Source of the DNA: Monocercomonoides exilis PA203
Lineage: Eukaryota; Protista; Preaxostyla
NCBI GenBank assembly: GCA_001643675.2
Contig: LSRY02000049.1
Location: 372,001 to 436,000 of the forward strand
Length of the DNA: 64,000 nt
Reading direction: 5' to 3'
Position 1 is the first letter of the stretch, and every line of letters begins with the position of its first letter. Below, piece by piece: positions 3,057-44,703 of this stretch. The translations under genes and the position numbers were made by a program. A model generated the notes under the pieces. The model had not been told where the DNA came from. It worked only from the letters and a program-made list of their open reading frames with translations, and ran no database searches.

Positions 3057-6000
3057 CTAGTAATTTTTCTTTGGAGAGGAAGTTGTTCTTGGAAGAAGTG
3101 AGCGAGTAGATCTAGCAGAAGGTGATGAATATGAAGAAGACTGAGAAGAATTTGACAAAGGTGAGGAGGAATTTTTGGAAGTGAAAAAGGACGAAAGAGG
3201 AGAAGTGGAAGGCATGTCAGTCTCTGAGCGAGGGGTGGGCTTGATGATTGAGTCGAGCGGAGTCAGCTGGGCTCCGTCTGACTCGTCGAGCGACTTCGAC
3301 CGGAAAGAACTGAATAGCTCTTCCTCTTTCGTGGGTGCCGGCTGCTGCCGCGGCGGTGACTGCGATTGAACCAGCTTCTCTCTTTCTCTCTCCTTTTCTG
3401 CAAGTTTCCTCTTCTCTCGCTCTCTTTCAAGCTCTTTCTGTCTTTCCATTTCCATCCGTTTTGCTTCCTCTTCCTCTTCCCTTTGCCTCCTTTTCGCTTC
3501 CTCCGAATCTCCGAACATCTTCAGCGCTGAGCTCAACGAGTCAATATCTCTTTTCAATCGATTGACCACACTAATATCTGCTTTCTCCTTCAGCTTCTCA
3601 GCAACCTCAGCTCTATCTGCTTTGCCGGCAATAACTCCGCTCTGATCAATAGGAACAGTCGCTGCCACGTCGTGCAGCTCCACTTTGTCTGCTTTCAATG
3701 CCAGTTTGGAGTCCGTTTCTCTGCCAAGTGTCTGAAGATCGTTGTGGTTGTTTTGCACAGCCGATGAAACAGACAGAAGTAATTGTGAGTTATTGCTAAC
3801 ATCTCCCTCTAATTGTGCGTGCTGCTCTTCAAGCTTGCTTATCCTGTGTTCGTGCTCGCCAATTATATTCTGCTGCTTTTGGGTGATTTCGTTCATACCT
3901 ACAAGCGAAGTCTCCAATGCTGCAACAGTTCCTTTTGTCGTGTCTTCTTGTTCTCTGTGCTTTTCTTCTGCTTCTTTAATAGCTTCGTCCATCTCCTGCA
4001 CAATCGAAGATATTTCTGACAGTTCATGTGCTATGCTCTTCTTTATCTGGCCAAGCTCATTCTCCATGTTGGAATCTCTGGCTGCTGATTGCTCAAATCC
4101 ATTTGCTGTGTTACGATGCTGCTCCATCAACGCGGAAGACAAAGTGACTGCATCTTTTGAAAGTGCTTGGATGATTTTAGACATTGATCGCATCGAAGTT
4201 GGATTGCCGCTTTGTTCAAGTGAACGAATAAGCGATGGAGCAACAAGGGCTGGCGAAACAGCAGCGTCTGATGATGATGATGATGATGAGGAGGAGGAGG
4301 AGGAAGGTTGATATGATGAGCCATATAGAGGCTTTGATGTTGTTTGAGGATAAGCCGATGACGACGACGAAGAAGAAGAAGGAGCAGAAGACATTTGCGG
4401 TTGCGAGGAAGTGGATCGGTCAAACAACATTGACGCTGATGAAGGAGTTGCGAACTGTGGATCTAATTCTTCAAACTCTTCGCTTTCTCTTCCTTCAACA
4501 ATCATCAGCGTCTCTTTTGCCTTTTTCATCATCTCTTCTCTGAGTTCTTCATCTTTTTCATTCAACGCTTTCTTCAGCTCTTCTGCCACTTCATCAACAT
4601 AGTTCTTCACATCTCCCGTGCCCGCTCTCAGTTCATTCACAACATTCTGCACCTCCAATTTAAATGTATCCATCTTACCCACTTCTTCAGAACATTCGTT
4701 GAGCCTTTGCTTCTCCTTCTCACTTTCGTCCATCATTTTCTCGAATTCTCGTCCAAGTCTTTGCAATCTGTCTGAAATGGTTGAAAGATCCTGAGCAATC
4801 TCCATCTTCAGCTCGTCCTGCTTGCTGCCAAACAGCTCAGTCATCGACGCCTTCGCATCATTCACCATCTGCTGGGACGACTCAAGGCACTCCCGCGTTG
4901 ACTGCTTCATCACATTGATAGCCTCAGCCTGCTTCTCTGCTGACTGCTTCTGCGCCTTTTCGAGCATTGCCCCGAGCTCAGTGGTGCGCTGGAACTGCTG
5001 CTCGATCTCTTCGCGCGCTTTTGCAACTTCAGCTGAGTGCAGCATCACATTCTCGTTCACAGACCGAAGATTGGAGCTAACATCTTCATTCACTTTGTCA
5101 AGTGCCATTTTTGCAGATGCAACTTCTCGTCTGACAAGTTCCATCTCTTCTTTCCTTTCTTTGAGCGCATCACGATGCGCTGCATGAAGTGTGGTGTATG
5201 CTGTTATTGCGTCTTCTGCCTTGTCCATCCGCTGCTTTGTGAGGAACACTTCTGAATCCTGCTCTCTCAAGCGCCTCTGATCTTCCTTCACCTCTTCCTT
5301 CAGCTTCTGCACATCACGTGCAACATCACTGCTCTTCTCAGCCTCATCTTCGACCATTCGTTTCAGCTCTTCAACAGTAGTCGTCTCTTCCTCAATCTTT
5401 CGCTGCAGTCTGTTCAGATCCTTTTGCGTTCCTTTCGTTTTCACATCAATCTCCAAACGCTGCACGGCATCATCAACACGAGGCTTGAATTGTTCAAATT
5501 CCTTCATTTTGATCTTCAGCACTTCCACGTCGTGGAACAGCTGCACACTCGGCGAGTACTCAGCCTCTTGGCTGGCACCCAGTCTTGAAGGTGAAGGTGA
5601 TGCTGTCTGATACAGACGAGAAGGAGAAGTGCTTGACATTCGTGTCTTTTCTTTGGTGCTCATGCCTTCGTCAATACCAATATCGTCATCGCTGCTCAAT
5701 CCTTTGCTGCTTTGAAGTCTTCCTCTTCGAAGAGACGCCTTAGGAATCTGGCTCTGGTTCATTGTCTGCTGCAGCATATCAGTCGCTTTCAATGTGTCGC
5801 TCAGGACTGCGTCTTGTTCTTTCAATACTTCTTCAACATTCAGCACTCTTTCAGCAAGTATATTCAGCATTTCTGAATCGGTATTCGACCGATGTGCTCT
5901 CTCTTCATCGCTCATTGCCTCCTGAAGCCCTACCAATGCCATTCCTTGCATCTTCAGCTCACTCTTCACATCTTCTAATTGTTGGCTTGCCTGGTTGGCC

Positions 6001-35289: not shown

Positions 35290-36001
35290 AATAATTAAAT
35301 GTCCCTTATATAATAAAATGTTATTCAAATTATTGAACTAGTAGTTAAAAAATTTTTTTGAAATTTCTTTTTGGTAGATTTGATTTTCATTTATGTTTTT
35401 GTCTTTTTTTTTTTAATTTATTAAAATAACAATAAGAATAAAATTAGCGTTTATGTTATCACTCCGCTTTTATGTGAATTAATACATCTTCGATAATCTG
35501 GTTTATAGGAACAATAAAAAATAATTCTGTTTTCAAAAAAATATGGCAAGACCGCATTATATGGGAATGGCCTATTTTCTGTGAAAATAATATATGAGGA
35601 ATGTTAATAATATATATCAAGTTTTCATGCAACAGAGATGTGCGGAAGTTGACAATAAAGTAAAAAACAAAAAATGAAAAATTGAGGAAAAAATGGGTGA
35701 ATGGATTTTCAAAATTTTCAATTTTAAATAATAAATAATTAATCAACTTCCATGGGGTCAAATTCTGATGCACTTGCACTGTCCCCAGCTCCAAGTGAAT
35801 CTGATTCTTCAAATTCTGTCATTTGAAGAATGTCATTTTCATCAAAAATATCAGATTCTAATTCTGATTCTGTCGAGTCACTTTCTTCACTTTCAGATTC
35901 TTCTAATTCGTTTTCTTTTCCCGTTAAATCAAAGACGATTTCCTTTATTAATTCCTCAAATTGAATTTGTAAATTGCTTCTGACAGACCACATAGATAAA
36001 T

Positions 36002-39000
36002 GGGTGATAATTTTTGAAAAATCACTTTTTTTTAGCCTGATCAGACCCACAAAAAATCAGATCGATATTTTTTGTTACCGTAATTTTTTCAAAATTAATT
36101 AAAGCACTCTTTTTTTTTACTAAGGAAGAGTTTGTCGTTTAATTATTAACAATACACTTTGTTAACACAAACTGATAATGTCAAAAATTGAAGATAATAT
36201 GTTTTCTTCTTCTTATTTGAATGAAACTCGCGCATTTGAATATTTCAAAATTTCTTCTTTAATGAGATGAGTTTTTCCTTTAAATTATTCGAGTTAAAAC
36301 ATTAATTATCATTTTCACCTCATTGAGAATACAAAATAATTAATTAATTTCATTGAATCTTTTTATTTTCACATATTTTTTTCCTAACAATTTTGCTTCT
36401 TTTGACGTTTTCTACGAATCAAAAATAGCATTAAAACAATATTGAAAGAATTTATTTGGTTTTGTGCTGAAAAGCAATATATAAAAACTTATTAAAGCCA
36501 AAAAAATAATATCTTTAGTAATTTTTGAATAATGTTCATTGTTATCTCATGTTCAATCAACACTTTTCATCGATTGGAAATAGCAGCGTTATTAACTTCC
36601 GTAAGTTTCATTGATTTCATCGAGAGGAACATACTAATTATGATATTTGAATCTAACGGATCGAAGAAAAATTGAAATAAGCCATTTCGTTGAGAGCATC
36701 AGTTATAACTGGATTCGACTCAGGAGTGGAGTCATCTGCTGCATAAGGGTGCAGACGCACAAGCGAAATGACACTCAAGGAGATGTTTTCAGTTTTGTGA
36801 GAAGTGCCACTTCCTTTGCTTTCAGCATTTATGGGAACGTCGTCGGGGAGTTGGTAAATTTTCTGGAGATTGATGTGAATGCGTTCCCTTTGATCTGCGA
36901 TATACTTGACTGGTTTCCAACGCAATCAGTGAAGAAGTGGATGGTATCGTAATTGCTAAAGTCGGAGAGCGTGGCAGTGTAACTGGACGACAAAGGCGGA
37001 TGAAGTGCAGATGCTGAGAGAGGCTTTCGGGAATAACGAGGCGATGATGGCGGAGCTTGCAGGGGAGAAGGAGGAGCTGTGTGGCGGATCCTGGAGCTAA
37101 AGGAGCAGCATAAGGAGGCTAAGCAAAAGATAAAGAAGAGACATTCGGAGTTCAACATGCTGTTGCAGAAGATCAGGGACAAAGAGCGGATCTCGAAGAT
37201 GACGAGCGGGCTGGCAGAGCAGCTGCAGGAGAAGGACAAAATCATCCGAATGCGGGAGAGGAAGATTCTGGAGCTGACCGAAAAGCACAACATAGAGGAG
37301 AAGGGATTGCAGGAGCAACTTGTTGCAATGAAGGAGAAGATGTCGTATGAAGAGACAGGGCAGTTATAGGCCGGAATGGTTTAGACACCGGAAGGGAAGG
37401 AGAAGCAGAAGAGAAATATGAGCATGGAGTGTATTTTTTGTAAAAATTGATTACGATAGTGAATCAGATGATAACAGTTTCTGGGTTGCTTAGGCAAGAA
37501 GAGTTCGAAACGGTGCATGTGCTTTGGATACCGATCACGTTGCATTCGTTTGTGAGGATGAAGCGTTTATTGAAGCCACTGAAGACAGAGCTTAAGTATT
37601 CGCTGGTATGGAAACTGTTAACGTCCAGTGGATATTCAGAGACTAATTCGCAGAAAATATAAGCAGGAGCAGAGAAGTGTGGTCAAAGGTGGCGGATCAG
37701 ACGCAGATGTTTTGGGGCTTTGGATTTATGTGGATGCGGAAGAAGCGCGAAATCCAGAAGAAGGGAGAGGCTAATCGATAGATGATGATATGCGAGGTGA
37801 ATCCATACCGGAAGGACTTTGTGGAGGTGTGGCTGTTTGGGAAGTTTGTATAAATGTTCTCAGGAGATTTGTTGTTGTTCAAACTGGTATTTAACAAGGC
37901 GCTTGAAATAGAATCGAAGATAAAAATATAAATGTTTTTTGTGGTGTTTCAATGGATTCATATAAAGAAGCGGGACAAAGATGTGTTGATATTACTGTAG
38001 TTTCTTGAGAACTACGTCATGGAAGAAGCAGCAAAGCGGAAGGAGGCGATAAAGGAGCAGTGCGATCAGATGCATAGAGGCTCTCCATTGACATTATCAT
38101 CATCGTCATCGGGAGCTGTGTGAAGAGACATCTTTTCAGATGAAATTGAGTCTTTCTGTGCGCATCATTAGCTGAGGCTTTAAGCGCTGTAGATGTCAAT
38201 CTTCCATGATACGAATTAACTGTCTGTGTTCTGTTTGCTATCATTTACGCCGGTGCTTGAGGTGTGCCAGCGCAATGCCTTCTTCGAGCTGCGCCTGCAT
38301 CTGCTGAATGTGTGTGACACTGCTGACCTGTGAATACCTCTGACGGCGTCTGAAAACTGAGCGGTTGTGAAGAATGTGAATCATAACTTTGCGCTGCAGA
38401 GTCAAAGCTGCACTGTCGCGTGCGGGTGCTTTAATGGGTTTTGGAGGGAGCAGGGATTGAAATCTGGTTGAAGCGTTCGATGAAGAATATGAAGAAGACT
38501 GTGAGGAAGAAAGAAGGGTGGAGGAGTTGTTCTTTATGTAGTGGCTGGTGACGGAGTTAATGGAGTTGGATGATTGAGGCAGAGGAAGCGAATGAGAAAA
38601 TGAGGGTGTTGATTGAAATGAAGTGAAAGGACGTAATCCAATATCATAAAGTGTGTTTCGAGAAATAATCAAAAAGAATCAGGAGAAGCTGTAAAAAATA
38701 GTTGCGCCTCTGATTGTGGAAGAGCGTTTGCTGCAGTGGCTGAAGTTTGTGAAGTCGGAAGAGTTGATTGCGATTCCTCCATATTTTCCAAATCAGCAGA
38801 AGGAGAATTTTTCATCTGAAAGAGAAAAATCAAATGGAAACGAACGCGATTCTGGAAGAGAGTAAAGAGAAGAAAATGTGGAGCGAATATGAACGAGAAT
38901 ATGAAATGGATGTTTGGAGTCAGATGGAGAATTGAAACATTTTGGATAAGGCATGGATGGAGAAGATATATGTGATTATGCAGCGATTGAGGCGGTTGTG

Positions 39001-40718
39001 CTCAGCAAAATTAACTTTTGTCTCTCTGTCACTATTATTGACATTTTCACATATGCCTTATCTTCCGCAGAGGCGCATCGAAATAGCTTCTGGAAACTTC
39101 CTCCTTCCGTGCCGCACCGGCGCTGCAGCTTTGCTCTCTTATTTTTGCAGTTGATTGAAGCATCGAGTCAGAGTAACGTGTTCCAATCGAAGAAGCCTGA
39201 TGTCGAGAAGATTTTGAAGGATCAGAATAAGACGAGGAAATGTACACAAACATTATCTCCACCATTATCTGCTTCGATTAAGTATTCTGCACATTAATCT
39301 AATTCTTTTTTCTTCCAGTAACTCTTAGATGATTCGTAATTGTTCTTTTCAGCCCATAAAAGATGCATTAGGATAGTTTAAAAGTTATTTCTTGAATTGA
39401 TAAGTGAAAATGATGAAGTATTGGAGATAAGTTTTGCTCACTTCATATTACTGACCTATTGTATGTAATTCTGAACATTTATTTGCTCTACGGAAAATGC
39501 TGTTTGTTTTGTGTGTCCGCTTCAAGAAAATATATACAGCCTGCATATGTGCATCTCTTCTGTTCCAGTGATCTCAAATAGCACTGAGTCTCGATAATTA
39601 TCACATGCAGAGTCATGCACAAGAGTGAGGTCATTGACAGTCAATGTTCCCATTGTTACAGAAAAAAAAGTCAAGCCAGCTTCTAATAATTCTGTTTACT
39701 CCGTTTTGTAAAAATTGCTTCTATCAGAAATTATGAATGTCCTCACACCATGGTTCACACTTGTTCATTTTGAAATAATTCTTGTGAGAATCACAATATT
39801 TTTTTCTAAGTTGGGGATCAGCTAAATTAAAAAATAACAAATAGAATTTAATAGATGGCTTTATTTCTTTCTGGTTGTTGTTGTTCTTTTCCAAATAAAT
39901 TCCTATGAAAAATAAGAATTACTCGAAATCTCACATTCATAGATGTTCAATGAGAATTTTTCATGACAATTTTTCATTGAATTTTACAATCATAAATGAT
40001 AAACTTTATCATATTGATTCTTGTCATATTCTTCAAATGTGCAGCTAAAAGTGCAGTCATCAATCTTTTCGCCTTTTAACTTTTATTTTAATAAAAAATG
40101 GCAGGAAGATTTGAAATCCATATTTGTAAATAAAGCAGTATCTCTCATCTTATCAGTCCAATCTTTCAGATGGAGTTTTGAGACTGGAAAGGTTAATATT
40201 GCTTGAGCAACAGACTTATGCTTGTGAAGCAAATTGACTTTCTTTGTGAATGAAATAGAGACGCAAAAATTTTTGAGAAACGCAGAAATCCCAATAATAG
40301 ATAGTGTACATTAAATTTTCATAACATGATTTAATAAATGTTCGATTTCCAAACCCTATGTTCAAATGTTGAATCCAAAAAGCGCACAAATTATAGATTG
40401 ATCATTAATGGAACAAATTTCGATTACCATGCTTCAAAACATCAATTTGTTTTTCGAAAGTGCTGTGGACAGTTTCATAACGATTATTTATATTAACCTG
40501 CATTCATTTATACTTGAAATAACAGATTTCATTCTGATCAAATACACAATATAAATCCAATATTTTCAAAACTTTTTTAATTCTCCTTAAAAGAATGCAT
40601 TTGTCAATTTAACATCGTTAATATGAACTTTATACATAAAAATTGAAGAAATTAAATCTGACTAAAAAATAGTGGTTCGAATTTTTGATATGTGGTGATT
40701 TTTCAAAAATTTTCACCC
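36002..40718. mobile_element. 4717-bp non-autonomous TIR element nested in Merlin and carrying gene fragments
   Basis: 24-bp TIR GGGTGAwAATTTTTGAAAAATCAC (one mismatch). 4-bp TSD AAAT at 35998-36001 and 40719-40722. No transposase motif recognised inside. Confidence 0.85.
39020..40300 (-). pseudogene. Decayed fragment of a beta-helix-type surface-protein gene carried inside the nested element; a further piece probably lies at ~36650-36930
   Basis: Reverse translation gives EAGLTFFSVTMGTLTVNDLTLVHDSACDNYRDSVLFEITGTEEMHICRL and QTAFSVEQINVQN, with stops and frameshifts. The alternating beta pattern recalls oxymonad multicopy surface proteins (recalled, not searched). Confidence 0.5.
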
Positions 40719-41781
40719 AAATAGTCCCCAAGACACTTTTCTCTGCATCCAGTTCTTGGAAAATATTTCCGAAAATTCATCCACAATCCTTCGACAGTGT
40801 TAGTGCAGGAATGTGTAATTTTGTTTTTGAATTCTCGCTTGTGACAGACAGTATCATGAGCGTAACCATAATCTTTCAATCTGGCATAAGCCTTCCTTTC
40901 ATCGCTCATAATCCGAGTTCCAGGAAGAATTTTGTCTCGTGTTATTGGAACCAATGTCTCAGCCTTCCTATTTGGCACAATCATCACAAAGTTCTTTCCC
41001 GCACCTCCATCTGGTTTCCTTTCCACAGCTCTAAATATCCAAATTTGTCTCTTCTTTTTCCCTCGCCCATACTTTCTGCGCCTCTAAACCGCTTCGTCGA
41101 TCTCCACAATTCTTCCCGTCCCTCCTCCAACAGCTTGATTTTTGTTCCAAATAGATGTGCATCTGACTCGAATAACGCTCGTCCAATAATGCATTGTGTT
41201 TTCACTTATTCCAAGCAGTTCACCAATGTGTGCGGCTAATATTCCAATGTCATTATACAATACAATCATCAAAAACTTTCTCAGTGGTATTTTCGATTTT
41301 TCCAAAGATGCGTTTTTAAAAGACTGTCAGTTTTTTGACAAATTTTCTGTATCTCCCGAACTTGTAATATTTGCCTCCGGATGAGAATATCATTTAGCAT
41401 TTATCATGTCTGCATTCAGGAGCTTCTCCTTCCAGCGCATTTTCGAAATACCATTTCCAAGCACTCATTTCATCCGAAAATATATTGTTGAGTTCACAAA
41501 TAGGTGTTTTTGTGAACATTCGTTGTGACAAAGACATTTGATGAATGTTTGATCAAACCCAAAAATACTTTAAAATAACCTTTTATCAAAAAATAAAAAC
41601 TATATAGAAGGTCACTTTCCGCAAGTTTTTTGGAGATAATAATTGCTTAATAATTTAAAATAAATCATCAAAAACGGAAAAAAACTTATTCCAGGTGTTC
41701 CCATATCTTCAGGTCTTGCCAAAAATATCCAAGAAAAATTCCACTGTCAATTTTCGGTTTTTTGAAAATATGAAAATATCA

Positions 41782-43326
41782 TTGTTGGTTGAAAACCTGG
41801 GAAAAAGAAGACAACCCGGGAAATTTTCTTTATGATCACACACTTTGTGTGTTGTTATGTGAAAACAACGAGAGAAATATAACCTTCGCAAATTTATATC
41901 TTTTCTTTCTTCGTCTGAATATAGAAAGAATTCAACAAGGCAGCTAAGAATCCTTAAAATAGTCCAAAAAATTGGTTTCAGAGCATCAGATGTATTCAAA
42001 GCAGGATTGATTTCGAAGGGTGCATACCACAGAGTTGTTAAGGCGAAAAATGAACATTGATATGTCGGAATAAATGGAAGACACTGGAAAATAAGAAAAA
42101 AGCATCGCGATGGAATATCAATGCAAATTAAAAATGATTCACACCATCTCAAAGGAACATCTGCAAAGCAATGCACAAAGGCGGTTTGAATGTTATTATT
42201 TCATTTTTTTAATTATTTTTTTATTATAAATAGGATCGTTTCATTTATTCTTCAAAAAAGAACGAATGCGTTAATAAAAAGGATGTGAATAAAAAGTGGA
42301 GTTATTCTGTTTCTTCCAAAATAAAAGGATATTCATTAAAAAAGACTTCAAAACTTCCAATAAATAGAATCAAACACTCAACAAAGCTCATTCTGCTTCC
42401 TTTTTTTTGAAGAGTTGTAAGAATTAAAAAAGAAGATAAAATATTCACTCCTGTTAATATTTAATCTTGATGAAACAAATATTCAAAGAGACACAACTGA
42501 ATGAACGAAGATAGTTCCTCTGCCGGATTGTCCCAGCCCAATTTCTCAAGAAGCACCTCTTCCTCCATCATTTTCCTTGCTTTAACTTATTTCTGCTTAC
42601 GGGGAACATTGTGAAAAACTTCTGTGATCAGTCATTCCACATCACTTCCTCAGGAATATGCACAGACCAACTCCGACAACTTTGTTTTTACTGCTTCTTC
42701 AAAGAAAGGAATGGATTCTTCTTTATTTTTTGACCTATTAAAATATGCAGTAGCTGATTCAATTGATAGAAGAAGAAAACTAATTGGATTATCAAACTTT
42801 CCTGCGTGAATGCATATGGATGGTGCAACAACCCACACGAGCAAAGATGTTTTGGAGCTGGCAAAGGAAAATAGGATCGATATTGTATTTCCTCCTTCGC
42901 ACACCTCGCACATCGTCCAGCCATAAGATAAATATGTCAATGCAAACATTAAGAGAATTATTTCCACTACTGAAACAGACTTTGTGCGAAGCAATGCCGC
43001 ATCAAACAGATCCAACTTCGTCAAAAAAACTTAAAGAAGCATTATCAGAAGTGTAAAAGACATCTGCCATCGTCGCATCTTTCAGGGATTCTGGTATTTG
43101 GCCCTTATAATCCTGAAGTTATACTGAAGAGCCTCTGTGAAACATCTCCTATTGAAGGTTGCGAAGCTTCCATCAACAAAACCAACTTGATAAATTACTC
43201 GAAGTGCAGAATTTTGACATTCGACTAAAGTTTTTTCAAATATTCACATTGAACATTTCATTGTATCTTTTTTTAATAACTGTTTTCTGTAAATAATAAT
43301 AATTTACTCGGGTTATCGACCAACTA
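41782..43326 (+). mobile_element. Degenerate pogo/Fot1-type (DDE_1) transposon with pseudogenised transposase
   Basis: IFNLDET (~42460), MDGATTH followed 35 codons later by PPSHTSHIVQP*D (D35D spacing), and SFRDSGIWP. Multiple stops. Degenerate TIR TwGTTGGTyGAwAACCyGrG with TA at 43327-43328. Confidence 0.8.
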
Positions 43327-44446: not shown

Positions 44447-44703
44447 GGGTGATTATATTTGAAATCCTATATTTTCTGTCATATTTTCCTTATTGAATTT
44501 TCGTCATTAATATTCATAAATTACCACTGAAAAGCGATAGAGCAATAATGTCACGTCTCTTCTTATTCTTCAGATCAAACAGTGGCTTTAGAAATAATAT
44601 AAAAACATTCAAAATATGCATGAAATTAAAAAGCAAATGACAATGAAATTACATAAAAATAAACACCCTAAAAATTTTTTTTTGATTTCAAAAAATATCA
44701 CCC
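44447..44703. mobile_element. 257-bp MITE with GGGTGAT termini related to the 4.7-kb nested element
   Basis: GGGTGATTATATTTGAAATC ... GATTTCAAAAAATATCACCC. Left flank AAAT, right flank ATTA (imperfect TSD). Confidence 0.65.

Follow-up and report, generated by a model that had tools for sequence, protein, structure and literature searches.

Merlin transposons are recognised by termini starting with GG, a target site duplication (TSD) of 8 or 9 bp and a DDE transposase of the IS1016/IS1595 kind. Merlin families F1-F7 with 8-bp TSDs have been published for Monocercomonoides sp. PA203 (Lopes et al., 2021; PMC8101967). These families, like the IS1595-IS1016 group, possess a DDE_Tnp_IS1595 domain, terminal inverted repeats (TIRs) of about 23 bp starting with GG and 8-bp TSDs without a consensus; many copies are pseudogenised with near-intact TIRs and TSDs (PMC8101967). 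The Merlin copy reported here, from the same species, agrees in all these points. It differs in being interrupted and dead.

Sola1 elements and their MITEs are reported to have 4-bp TSDs, A..T or AWWT-type targets and TIRs starting with GG (Bao et al., 2009, via PMC3845634 and PMC10741241); abundant short MITE derivatives exist beside elements of several kb (PMC3845634; PMC10741241), and an AWWT/AWDT target preference is reported as a hallmark (PMC3845634). The family inserted into our Merlin, here designated by its terminal GGGTGA, shares these properties. It differs in that no DDD transposase was seen in the elements examined, that the two middle letters of the TSD vary more widely (ACAT, AGGT, ATGT and ACTT are used too), and that the host is an oxymonad protist; a literature search found no description of Sola in oxymonads. 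A further likeness exists to Pack-MULE-type elements, i.e., TIR-bounded, transposase-less units present in dozens of copies, with a host-like gene interior which is decayed in most copies. Yet the TSD here is 4 bp long instead of 9-10 bp, the superfamily is a different one, and the cargo resembles one or two near-complete genes plus an upstream region rather than small exon fragments. With nested insertions in general, such as the maize intergenic nests or MITEs within MITEs, the locus has in common that a younger element sits in an older one, that both TSDs are kept and that cutting out the insert in silico recovers the host element; nothing of substance sets it apart.

The window is a stretch of 64,000 nucleotides from Monocercomonoides exilis PA203 (contig LSRY02000049.1, positions 372,001 to 436,000). 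It is virtually certain that it contains two nested elements, a 4.7-kb insert inside a Merlin. The outer ends, in window coordinates, are:

35537-35544, no strand, left 8-bp TSD of the outer Merlin, AAAAATAT, identical to 41721-41728
35545-35567, plus strand, left TIR of the outer Merlin, GGCAAGACC-N5-ATATGGGAA, read directly as one of an inverted-repeat pair
41698-41720, minus strand, right TIR of the outer Merlin, reverse complement of GGCAAGACC-N5-ATATGGGAA, read directly as the other of the pair
41721-41728, no strand, right 8-bp TSD, AAAAATAT, read directly

The exact 8-bp duplication is as the first-pass annotation, a reading of the bare letters, had described it, and all other positions and sequences given there were likewise confirmed. 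Perfect 8-bp TSDs also surround eight sister copies, and their sequence differs from copy to copy. The outer terminal pattern has 46 genomic matches (22+24) compared with 0 for a reversed control, which greatly exceeds a chance level. Other pairs of these termini are spaced by about 1453-1456 bp; the pair in the window spans 6176 bp. The Merlin family comprises about 25 copies, across which the TIR pattern is conserved.

The insert has ends and a duplication of its own:

35998-36001, no strand, left 4-bp TSD, AAAT, a single AAAT in uninterrupted Merlin paralogs
36002-36025, plus strand, left TIR, GGGTGAtAATTTTTGAAAAATCAC, starting GGGTGA, of an inverted-repeat pair (25 nt, 96% complementary)
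36002-40718, plus strand, the insert as a whole (4717 bp), a non-autonomous, cargo-carrying member of the GGGTGA family with 4-bp ANNT TSDs (Sola1-like), delimited by TIRs, TSDs and relatives
40695-40718, minus strand, right TIR, complement of GGGTGAtAATTTTTGAAAAATCAC with 1 mismatch in 24, an exact match to the family consensus
40719-40722, no strand, right 4-bp TSD, AAAT, read directly

The AAAT flanks had likewise been proposed beforehand, and so had the consequence of excision. In-silico removal of 36002-40722 yields 1455 bp (about 1455 bp had been expected). A genome search suggested at the same time retrieved at least 14 uninterrupted copies with which the reconstruction aligns end to end at 82-92% identity. 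In these copies AAAT occurs once at the empty site, and their protein reads ...LGDYLSMWLVRRNLQIQ... across it. Excision joins ...CLGDY to LSMWSVRSNLQIQFEE... in one minus-strand frame, with the Tyr codon straddling the joint, and wherever the frame is readable the paralogs run on as ...LGDYLSMWLVRRNLQIQFEE, which bears out the continuation that had been predicted past the joint.

The two Merlin arms carry the following parts of the transposase gene:

35545-36001, minus strand, left arm with the transposase gene's 3' end, colinear with positions 1-457 in copies that are uninterrupted
35739-35741, minus strand, transposase stop codon, from the translation; the left arm also contains untranslated sequence
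35742-35999, minus strand, acidic C-terminal tail, from the translation
40706-41083, minus strand, DDE piece, DDE_Tnp_IS1595 (PF12762), E 4.8e-19
40723-41720, minus strand, right arm with the 5' three-quarters of the gene, from ORFs and translation
41087-41305, minus strand, HTH piece with a weak HTH_23 match and a premature stop at 41084-41086
between 41306 and 41393, minus strand, frameshift, placed by comparison with paralog ORFs
41397-41537, minus strand, N-terminal piece with a premature stop at 41394-41396

The profile comparison proposed by the first-pass annotation was carried out. The value of the DDE piece in the window is matched by sister ORFs (E 3.5e-22 for a 323-aa ORF in L003 and 1.5e-20 in L006). 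GG-ended TIRs, an 8-bp TSD and an IS1595-type DDE domain are all present, and the Merlin identity originally assigned is correct. The gene itself is disrupted by two premature stops, one frameshift and the 4.7-kb insertion; this copy is a dead pseudogene. The loss concerns activity and not membership in Merlin. As the copy is a pseudogene, excision rejoins the frame at the joint and does not produce a working gene. In this respect the earlier claim that excision restores the transposase C-terminus stands for the frame at the joint, not for a functional gene. No complete transposase ORF exists in any of 15 sister copies; the longest has 328 aa.

The inner terminal pattern has 108 genomic matches (49+59, up to 3 mismatches) versus 0 in the control. 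The nearest copy of the 4.7-kb insert is located at C69:127925-132478 with the TSD ACTT, and another copy (C15) is flanked by AATT. Relatives in L062-L065 have arms and internal blocks in common, in the same order. The insert is further related to 240-bp and 256-bp MITEs, the latter type with roughly 1,600 copies. Each of the 11 complete family elements which could be read has a perfect 4-bp A-N-N-T TSD, namely ATAT (four times), AAAT (twice), AATT, ACAT, AGGT, ATGT and ACTT, and 7 of the 11 are AWWT. Single-end flanks of the family nearly all fit A-N-N-T as well. A transposase domain was absent from every ORF of the insert (Pfam on ten ORFs returned nothing significant), and neither a transposase nor an autonomous partner was found in the insert or in the family relatives examined. 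The constant duplication of a 4-bp A-N-N-T target in this family favours a Sola1-type enzyme. The mobilising enzyme is most likely a DDD transposase of this type, and we predict a Sola1 assignment with moderate confidence. As no Sola1 transposase was identified, the superfamily call draws on three features, the length of the TSD, its target pattern and the GGG at the termini. The assembly paper left 35% of the M. exilis genome as "unclassified repeats" (PMC8767320); the GGGTGA family is probably part of these.

What the insert does contain are remnants of genes:

36990-38396, plus strand, gene A remnant of a coiled-coil / low-complexity family, decayed and colinear with residues 230-353, 694-777 and 808-1080 of an intact 1385-aa paralog
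38757-39001, plus strand, the internal block that is best conserved within the element family, 80-85% DNA identity to at least 9 members
39313-39697, minus strand, gene B remnant, a Chlamydia-Pmp-like beta-helix repeat protein, reading inward from the right end and homologous to ORFs in L062, L064 and L065

A tblastn search of the element with the gene A paralog (L067:5558-9712:-) gave matches in three frames with 42-78% amino-acid identity, and the gene A blocks have at least 35 genomic DNA matches. Pfam returned no match for the remnant or the intact 1385-aa paralog, and a word-based protein search with residues 60-400 retrieved nothing at E <= 0.001. For residues 690-1110 the ESM Atlas contains hypothetical eukaryotic clusters only, one with EF-hands. 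The sole intact copies of gene A (C41 and C42) are devoid of a TIR arm, and their homology to TIR-bearing copies begins 283 bp upstream of the ATG. They could be donor genes or, equally, 5'-truncated elements. The conserved block has 90.6% protein identity to L046 in its plus-strand frame, which exceeds the DNA identity. For gene B the fuller ORF in L064 has a weak Chlam_PMP match (E 0.066), and the ESM Atlas returns Chlam_PMP clusters with a score of 0.94. As in Pack-type elements, the interior is homologous to non-transposon genes and is free of a transposase.

Some positions within the Merlin were struck repeatedly. Positions 454-457 are occupied in the window copy and in C15, positions 546-549 in C36 and C15. 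In another Merlin copy (L013/L066) the same AAAT site holds a 254-bp MITE. Shared ancestry of the inserts at that site was considered and rejected because the one, of 4.7 kb, and the other, of 254 bp, are members of different families. Each Merlin has 90 AWWT sites, and with about 8 independent insertion events the estimated chance of one same-site coincidence is about one in four. Nested MITEs are present in six or more further copies of the Merlin family.

Taken as a whole, the locus is very probably explained by two successive cut-and-paste insertions, both of which are now fossils. At first, a Merlin of about 1455 bp would have entered an AT-rich intergenic stretch and duplicated the 8-bp target AAAAATAT. 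Later, the 4.7-kb non-autonomous GGGTGA...TCACCC element would have entered AAAT, in a Tyr codon within the 3' portion of the Merlin's transposase gene, and duplicated these 4 bp. Since the insert is without a transposase of its own, it must have been moved by an enzyme with its gene at another place. Mobilisation in trans is thus inferred, and so are the succession of the insertions and their approximate timing. The divergences appear to fit the nesting order: the Merlin copy differs from the family majority consensus by 6.8% (K2P), and the insert from its nearest sister (C69) by a K2P distance of 0.068, or 6.8%, which corresponds to about 3.4% per lineage.

It is possible, if on balance doubtful, that the nesting is real and the inner family is not Sola1, having been moved by a pogo-like DDE_1 enzyme or by an undescribed transposase which duplicates A-N-N-T. 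The lack of a Sola1 transposase in the insert and in the relatives examined speaks in its favour, as do at least 150 DDE_1 matches in the genome, many with open frames of 400-660 aa. However, of the 150 listed DDE_1 matches none falls between a pair of TIRs of the 4.7-kb family. A few are less than 3 kb from MITE-type termini, a frequency not above chance. Pogo and Tc1/mariner elements duplicate TA, which argues against a pogo driver. So does a pogo-like gene fragment (L020:3337-3996:-), in which a repeat of the GGGTGA type could not be recognised over 840 bp past the gene end, a stretch that covers one side of the element and may stop short of its true terminus. A 4-bp A-N-N-T target is a reported mark of Sola1 (PMC3845634). 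Alternatively, gene A or gene B might be an unrecognised transposase and the inner element autonomous. The same two inward-reading genes are indeed common to family members, and gene A has no relatives in Pfam or the word search. We consider this most improbable: gene A resembles a coiled-coil, low-complexity protein with hypothetical eukaryotic Atlas clusters as closest relatives, one of them EF-hand-bearing; gene B belongs with the beta-helix repeat proteins of the Pmp type; the sole intact gene A copies have no TIR arm; and at the DNA level gene A is absent from many TIR-bounded members of the family.

The nesting itself has been weighed against two further explanations. The entire 6.2-kb unit might be a single cargo-carrying Merlin, a 'Pack-Merlin'. 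We give this hardly any credence. The interior is bounded by 24-bp TIRs and a 4-bp duplication which are separate from those of the Merlin, it exists elsewhere without a surrounding Merlin (C69, flanks ACTT), and the flanking Merlin is exactly colinear with the uninterrupted 1455-bp copies without loss of sequence; in the genomic scan with the terminal pattern there were no further 6.2-kb copies with the same Merlin ends. Just as far-fetched is an assembly artefact, in which the Nanopore assembler would have joined a non-adjacent Merlin copy and a GGGTGA element. Both are multi-copy repeats, and the junctions were checked with Logan contigs, which stem from the same sample as the assembly; one run is dated 2016. 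None of the listed Logan contigs bridges the inner left junction. The inner right junction, on the other hand, is crossed from 40620 to 40840 without differences by a short-read-derived contig (run X2, record 16), and a contig of the 2016 run thus speaks against a false join. A chimera would neither yield exact 4-bp and 8-bp duplications nor leave Merlin halves which are exactly complementary. The published read N50 of the PA203 Nanopore assembly, 8.9 kb, is larger than the whole 6.2-kb structure (PMC8767320).

One may go further and regard the GGGTGA family as a gene-shuttling system. Complete host genes, namely gene A (1385 aa) together with its promoter region and the gene for a Pmp-like surface protein, would then have been copied to dozens of M. 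exilis loci, with some copies still intact and expressed; the driver would perhaps stand outside the described Sola1 clade, and the shared Merlin positions would be real target hot spots. We mention this as a speculation which is unlikely to hold.

The locus is a clean, textbook but ordinary case of nesting. Merlin in this species has already been published, nesting is common in the genome, and with nested insertions being routine the locus alone carries little weight. Its value is that of a clean, datable example, in which the empty site establishes both the 4-bp duplication and where exactly the elements of the GGGTGA family end. For annotation, it shows that the ORFs scattered from 35.5 to 41.7 kb are remains of transposons and not genes. 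The picture at the level of the family may merit study: thousands of Sola1-like MITEs together with gene-carrying members in an amitochondriate protist, of which this locus is one instance.

The nested arrangement described in the first-pass annotation is confirmed. All of its repeats and duplications are present at their places, as established by direct reading of 35400-36200 and 40500-41900 together with a repeat scan:

35537-35544 and 41721-41728: outer 8-bp duplication AAAAATAT (direct reading)
35545-35567 and, as complement, 41698-41720: outer inverted repeat GGCAAGACC-N5-ATATGGGAA (direct reading and repeat scan)
35998-36001 and 40719-40722: inner duplication AAAT (direct reading)
36002-36025 and 40695-40718: inner inverted repeat of 24 nt with GGGTGA start, 1 mismatch (direct reading and repeat scan)

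Deletion of 36002-40722 in silico leaves 1455 bp. On the minus strand the joint then reads ...REKCLGDY/LSMWSVRSNLQIQFEE... in a single frame and falls within a Tyr codon, i.e., excision fuses the transposase pieces in frame as had been claimed.

The outer element is a Merlin transposon. Lopes et al. (2021; PMC8101967) reported >100 Merlin copies in strain PA203, in at least 7 families, with TIRs of 23-29 bp and TSDs of 8 bp; many of the copies are pseudogenised. In kind and host alike, the outer element is thus already known. We searched the genome (82,301,135 bases, 101 contigs), which corresponds to the published Nanopore assembly of 101 contigs, ~82.3 Mbp and an N50 of 1,379,369 bp (PMC8767320). 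The outer terminal pattern has 22 + 24 genomic matches, the reversed control 0. Normal pairs are spaced 1452-1456 bp apart, the window pair 6176 bp. Eight Merlin copies have perfect 8-bp duplications, each of a different sequence. The Merlin right arm by itself matches 44 genomic places. When the 1455-bp reconstruction was aligned by BLAST against these loci, as the annotation had proposed, at least 14 uninterrupted copies matched from base 1 to 1455 with 82-92% identity. In a multiple alignment these copies carry ...CCACATAGATAAATAGTCCCCAAG..., with one AAAT exactly at the insertion point of the window. They are paralogous empty sites. Where the frame is readable, paralog proteins run ...REKYLGDYLSMWLVRRNLQIQFEE... 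across the site; the refuting outcome named in the annotation, Merlin transposases that do not continue past the joint, is therefore not observed.

The DDE piece at 40706-41083 (minus strand) matches Pfam DDE_Tnp_IS1595 with an E-value of 4.8e-19, bearing out the suggested profile check. The same profile is found in a 323-aa ORF of locus L003 (E 3.5e-22) and a 312-aa ORF of locus L006 (1.5e-20), both with a weak helix-turn-helix upstream of the DDE domain (L-numbers denote genomic loci cut out for comparison, C-numbers genome contigs). By eye, a putative Cys-rich N-terminal motif, which has no Pfam match, is apparent in the paralogs. Judged from its coding sequence the window copy is dead: compared with the paralogs, a Lys codon has become a stop at 41394-41396, the frame shifts once between 41306 and 41393, and a Trp codon has become a stop at 41084-41086, directly behind the motif of the first catalytic Asp. 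A complete transposase ORF is absent from all 15 full-length Merlin copies read.

Read support was taken from Logan contigs of four runs, from one study and the same sample as the assembly, placed on 35500-41499. The inner right junction is bridged by one 221-nt contig of a 2016 run (40620-40840) with zero differences; for the inner left junction there is no bridging piece among the Logan contigs listed. Loose ends at 40719 continue into uninterrupted Merlin paralog sequence, as expected of a multi-copy family.

The inner element belongs to a dispersed family. Its 24-nt terminus has 49 + 59 genomic matches at ≤3 mismatches (control 0), and about 35 terminus pairs are spaced 3.3-5.7 kb. A sister at C69:127925-132478 (K2P 0.068) is flanked differently and has a duplication of its own, ACTT; on C15, a relative of 5.7 kb has AATT. 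The GGGTGA start is common to two related MITE families of ~240 bp and ~256 bp. The 256-bp terminus has 1608 forward and 1598 reverse matches at ≤3 mismatches (control 0), hence roughly 1,600 copies, one per roughly 50 kb. In the loci read, all 11 complete GGGTGA-start elements, comprising the family of the insert and both MITE families, have perfect 4-bp duplications. All 11 are of the form A-N-N-T (ATAT four times, AAAT twice, AATT, ACAT, AGGT, ATGT and ACTT once each), and nearly all single ends agree; by our estimate roughly one site in ten would fit such an A...T frame by chance. Duplications of 4 bp with a preference for AWWT/AWDT targets are described as the hallmark of Sola1, and Sola1 MITEs also begin with GG (PMC3845634; PMC10741241). 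The GGGTGA family is therefore probably Sola1-like; this assignment is held at moderate confidence because no transposase was found for the family. Another MITE, 257 bp long and of the GGGTGATTAT... family, is located at 44447-44703, 2.7 kb downstream of Merlin; its flanks, AAAT and ATTA, indicate a decayed duplication.

None of the insert's ORFs matches a Pfam family significantly. The insert contains remnants of two genes. Using an intact 1385-aa paralog (L067:5558-9712, minus strand, C41) as tblastn query, a colinear, frame-broken remnant of gene A was detected at 36990-38396 on the plus strand, corresponding to residues 230-353, 694-777 and 808-1080. The intact ORF contains coiled coils as well as runs of Gly, Ser and Lys, and has a 98% duplicate in L068 (C42). 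Gene A has no Pfam family, a word-based protein search found no relatives, and its Atlas neighbours are hypothetical eukaryotic proteins only; at the DNA level it has at least 35 genomic matches. Its GC content is 60-65% where intact versus 40-52% in the insert, as expected of a decaying copy. Decayed gene A copies are carried in GGGTGA elements by the dozen. Toward the right end of the insert lies a gene B remnant (39313-39697, minus strand). Fuller relatives show gene B to be a beta-helix repeat protein of the Pmp type (E 0.066 for Pfam Chlam_PMP; a score of 0.94 to Chlam_PMP clusters in the Atlas). The blocks of the insert recur in unchanged order in L062-L065. Many other GGGTGA TIR pairs are without gene A at the DNA level, so interiors differ within the family. 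The intact copies on C41 and C42 have no TIR arm, and their homology to TIR-bearing copies (C6, C1, C91) starts 283 bp upstream of the start codon. This is consistent with capture of the whole gene including its upstream region; alternatively, the copies without TIR arm could be products of truncation.

Merlin copies elsewhere also harbor nested elements:

L023 (TSD AGGT), L024 and L027 (TSD ATAT): 240-bp MITEs
L028 (TSD ATGT), L017 and L013/L066: 256-bp-family MITEs
L021 (TSD ATTT): GGGGG-ended MITE of a distinct kind
L028, 1057-1501 (C36): 445-bp Tc1/mariner-type MITE with CAGT...ACTG-type termini and TA duplication, in the Merlin also holding a GGGTAA MITE

In L013/L066 (C15:174500-181000) a 254-bp GGGTGATTAT-family MITE occupies Merlin positions 454-457 (numbering of the 1455-bp reconstruction), exactly the AAAT hit in the window. 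It is from a family other than that of the window insert, hence the two hits are independent. L028 and L017 each have a 256-bp-family MITE at 546-549. Merlin has 90 AWWT sites; with ~8 independent events by our count, we estimate the chance of one same-site coincidence at roughly one in four. The shared positions may be local target hot spots, at an estimated level which is not significant at present numbers.

Rearranged Merlin copies were also seen. In L024/L025 (C11:223798-228367) two inverted partial copies (positions 1-1125) are joined at a 240-bp MITE, a ~2.5-kb palindrome with the MITE at its centre, which may be a genuine fold-back duplication or may have arisen in the assembly. In L005/L007 (C19:622166-627599) a full-length Merlin adjoins an inverted partial one (positions 471-1455) head to head. 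In L020 a partial pogo-like copy (3337-3996, minus strand) adjoins Merlin. Pogo-like DDE_1 has at least 150 genome matches (732 first-look candidates), many with stop-free open frames of 400-660 aa; such abundance and open frames suggest a large, possibly active population.

The order of events, Merlin first and then the insert, is fixed by the nesting itself. Merlin differs from its family majority consensus by 6.8% (K2P), compared with ~3.4% on each of the two lineages leading to the insert and its C69 sister; these figures agree with this order. Mechanistically, Merlin transposase cut with an 8-bp stagger at AAAAATAT, and the copy then decayed or was decaying already. A transposase acting in trans, recognising the GGGTGA ends of the 4.7-kb insert, would then have integrated that element with a 4-bp stagger at AAAT within the Merlin gene.

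In sum, the locus is a tidy and well-documented nested insertion of two transposons whose kinds are already known, and the protist genome around it is rich in repeats; 35% of the assembly are unclassified repeats and 4.5% DNA transposons (PMC8767320). The transposase of the GGGTGA family and its habit of carrying genes are a matter of the family, not of the window locus.
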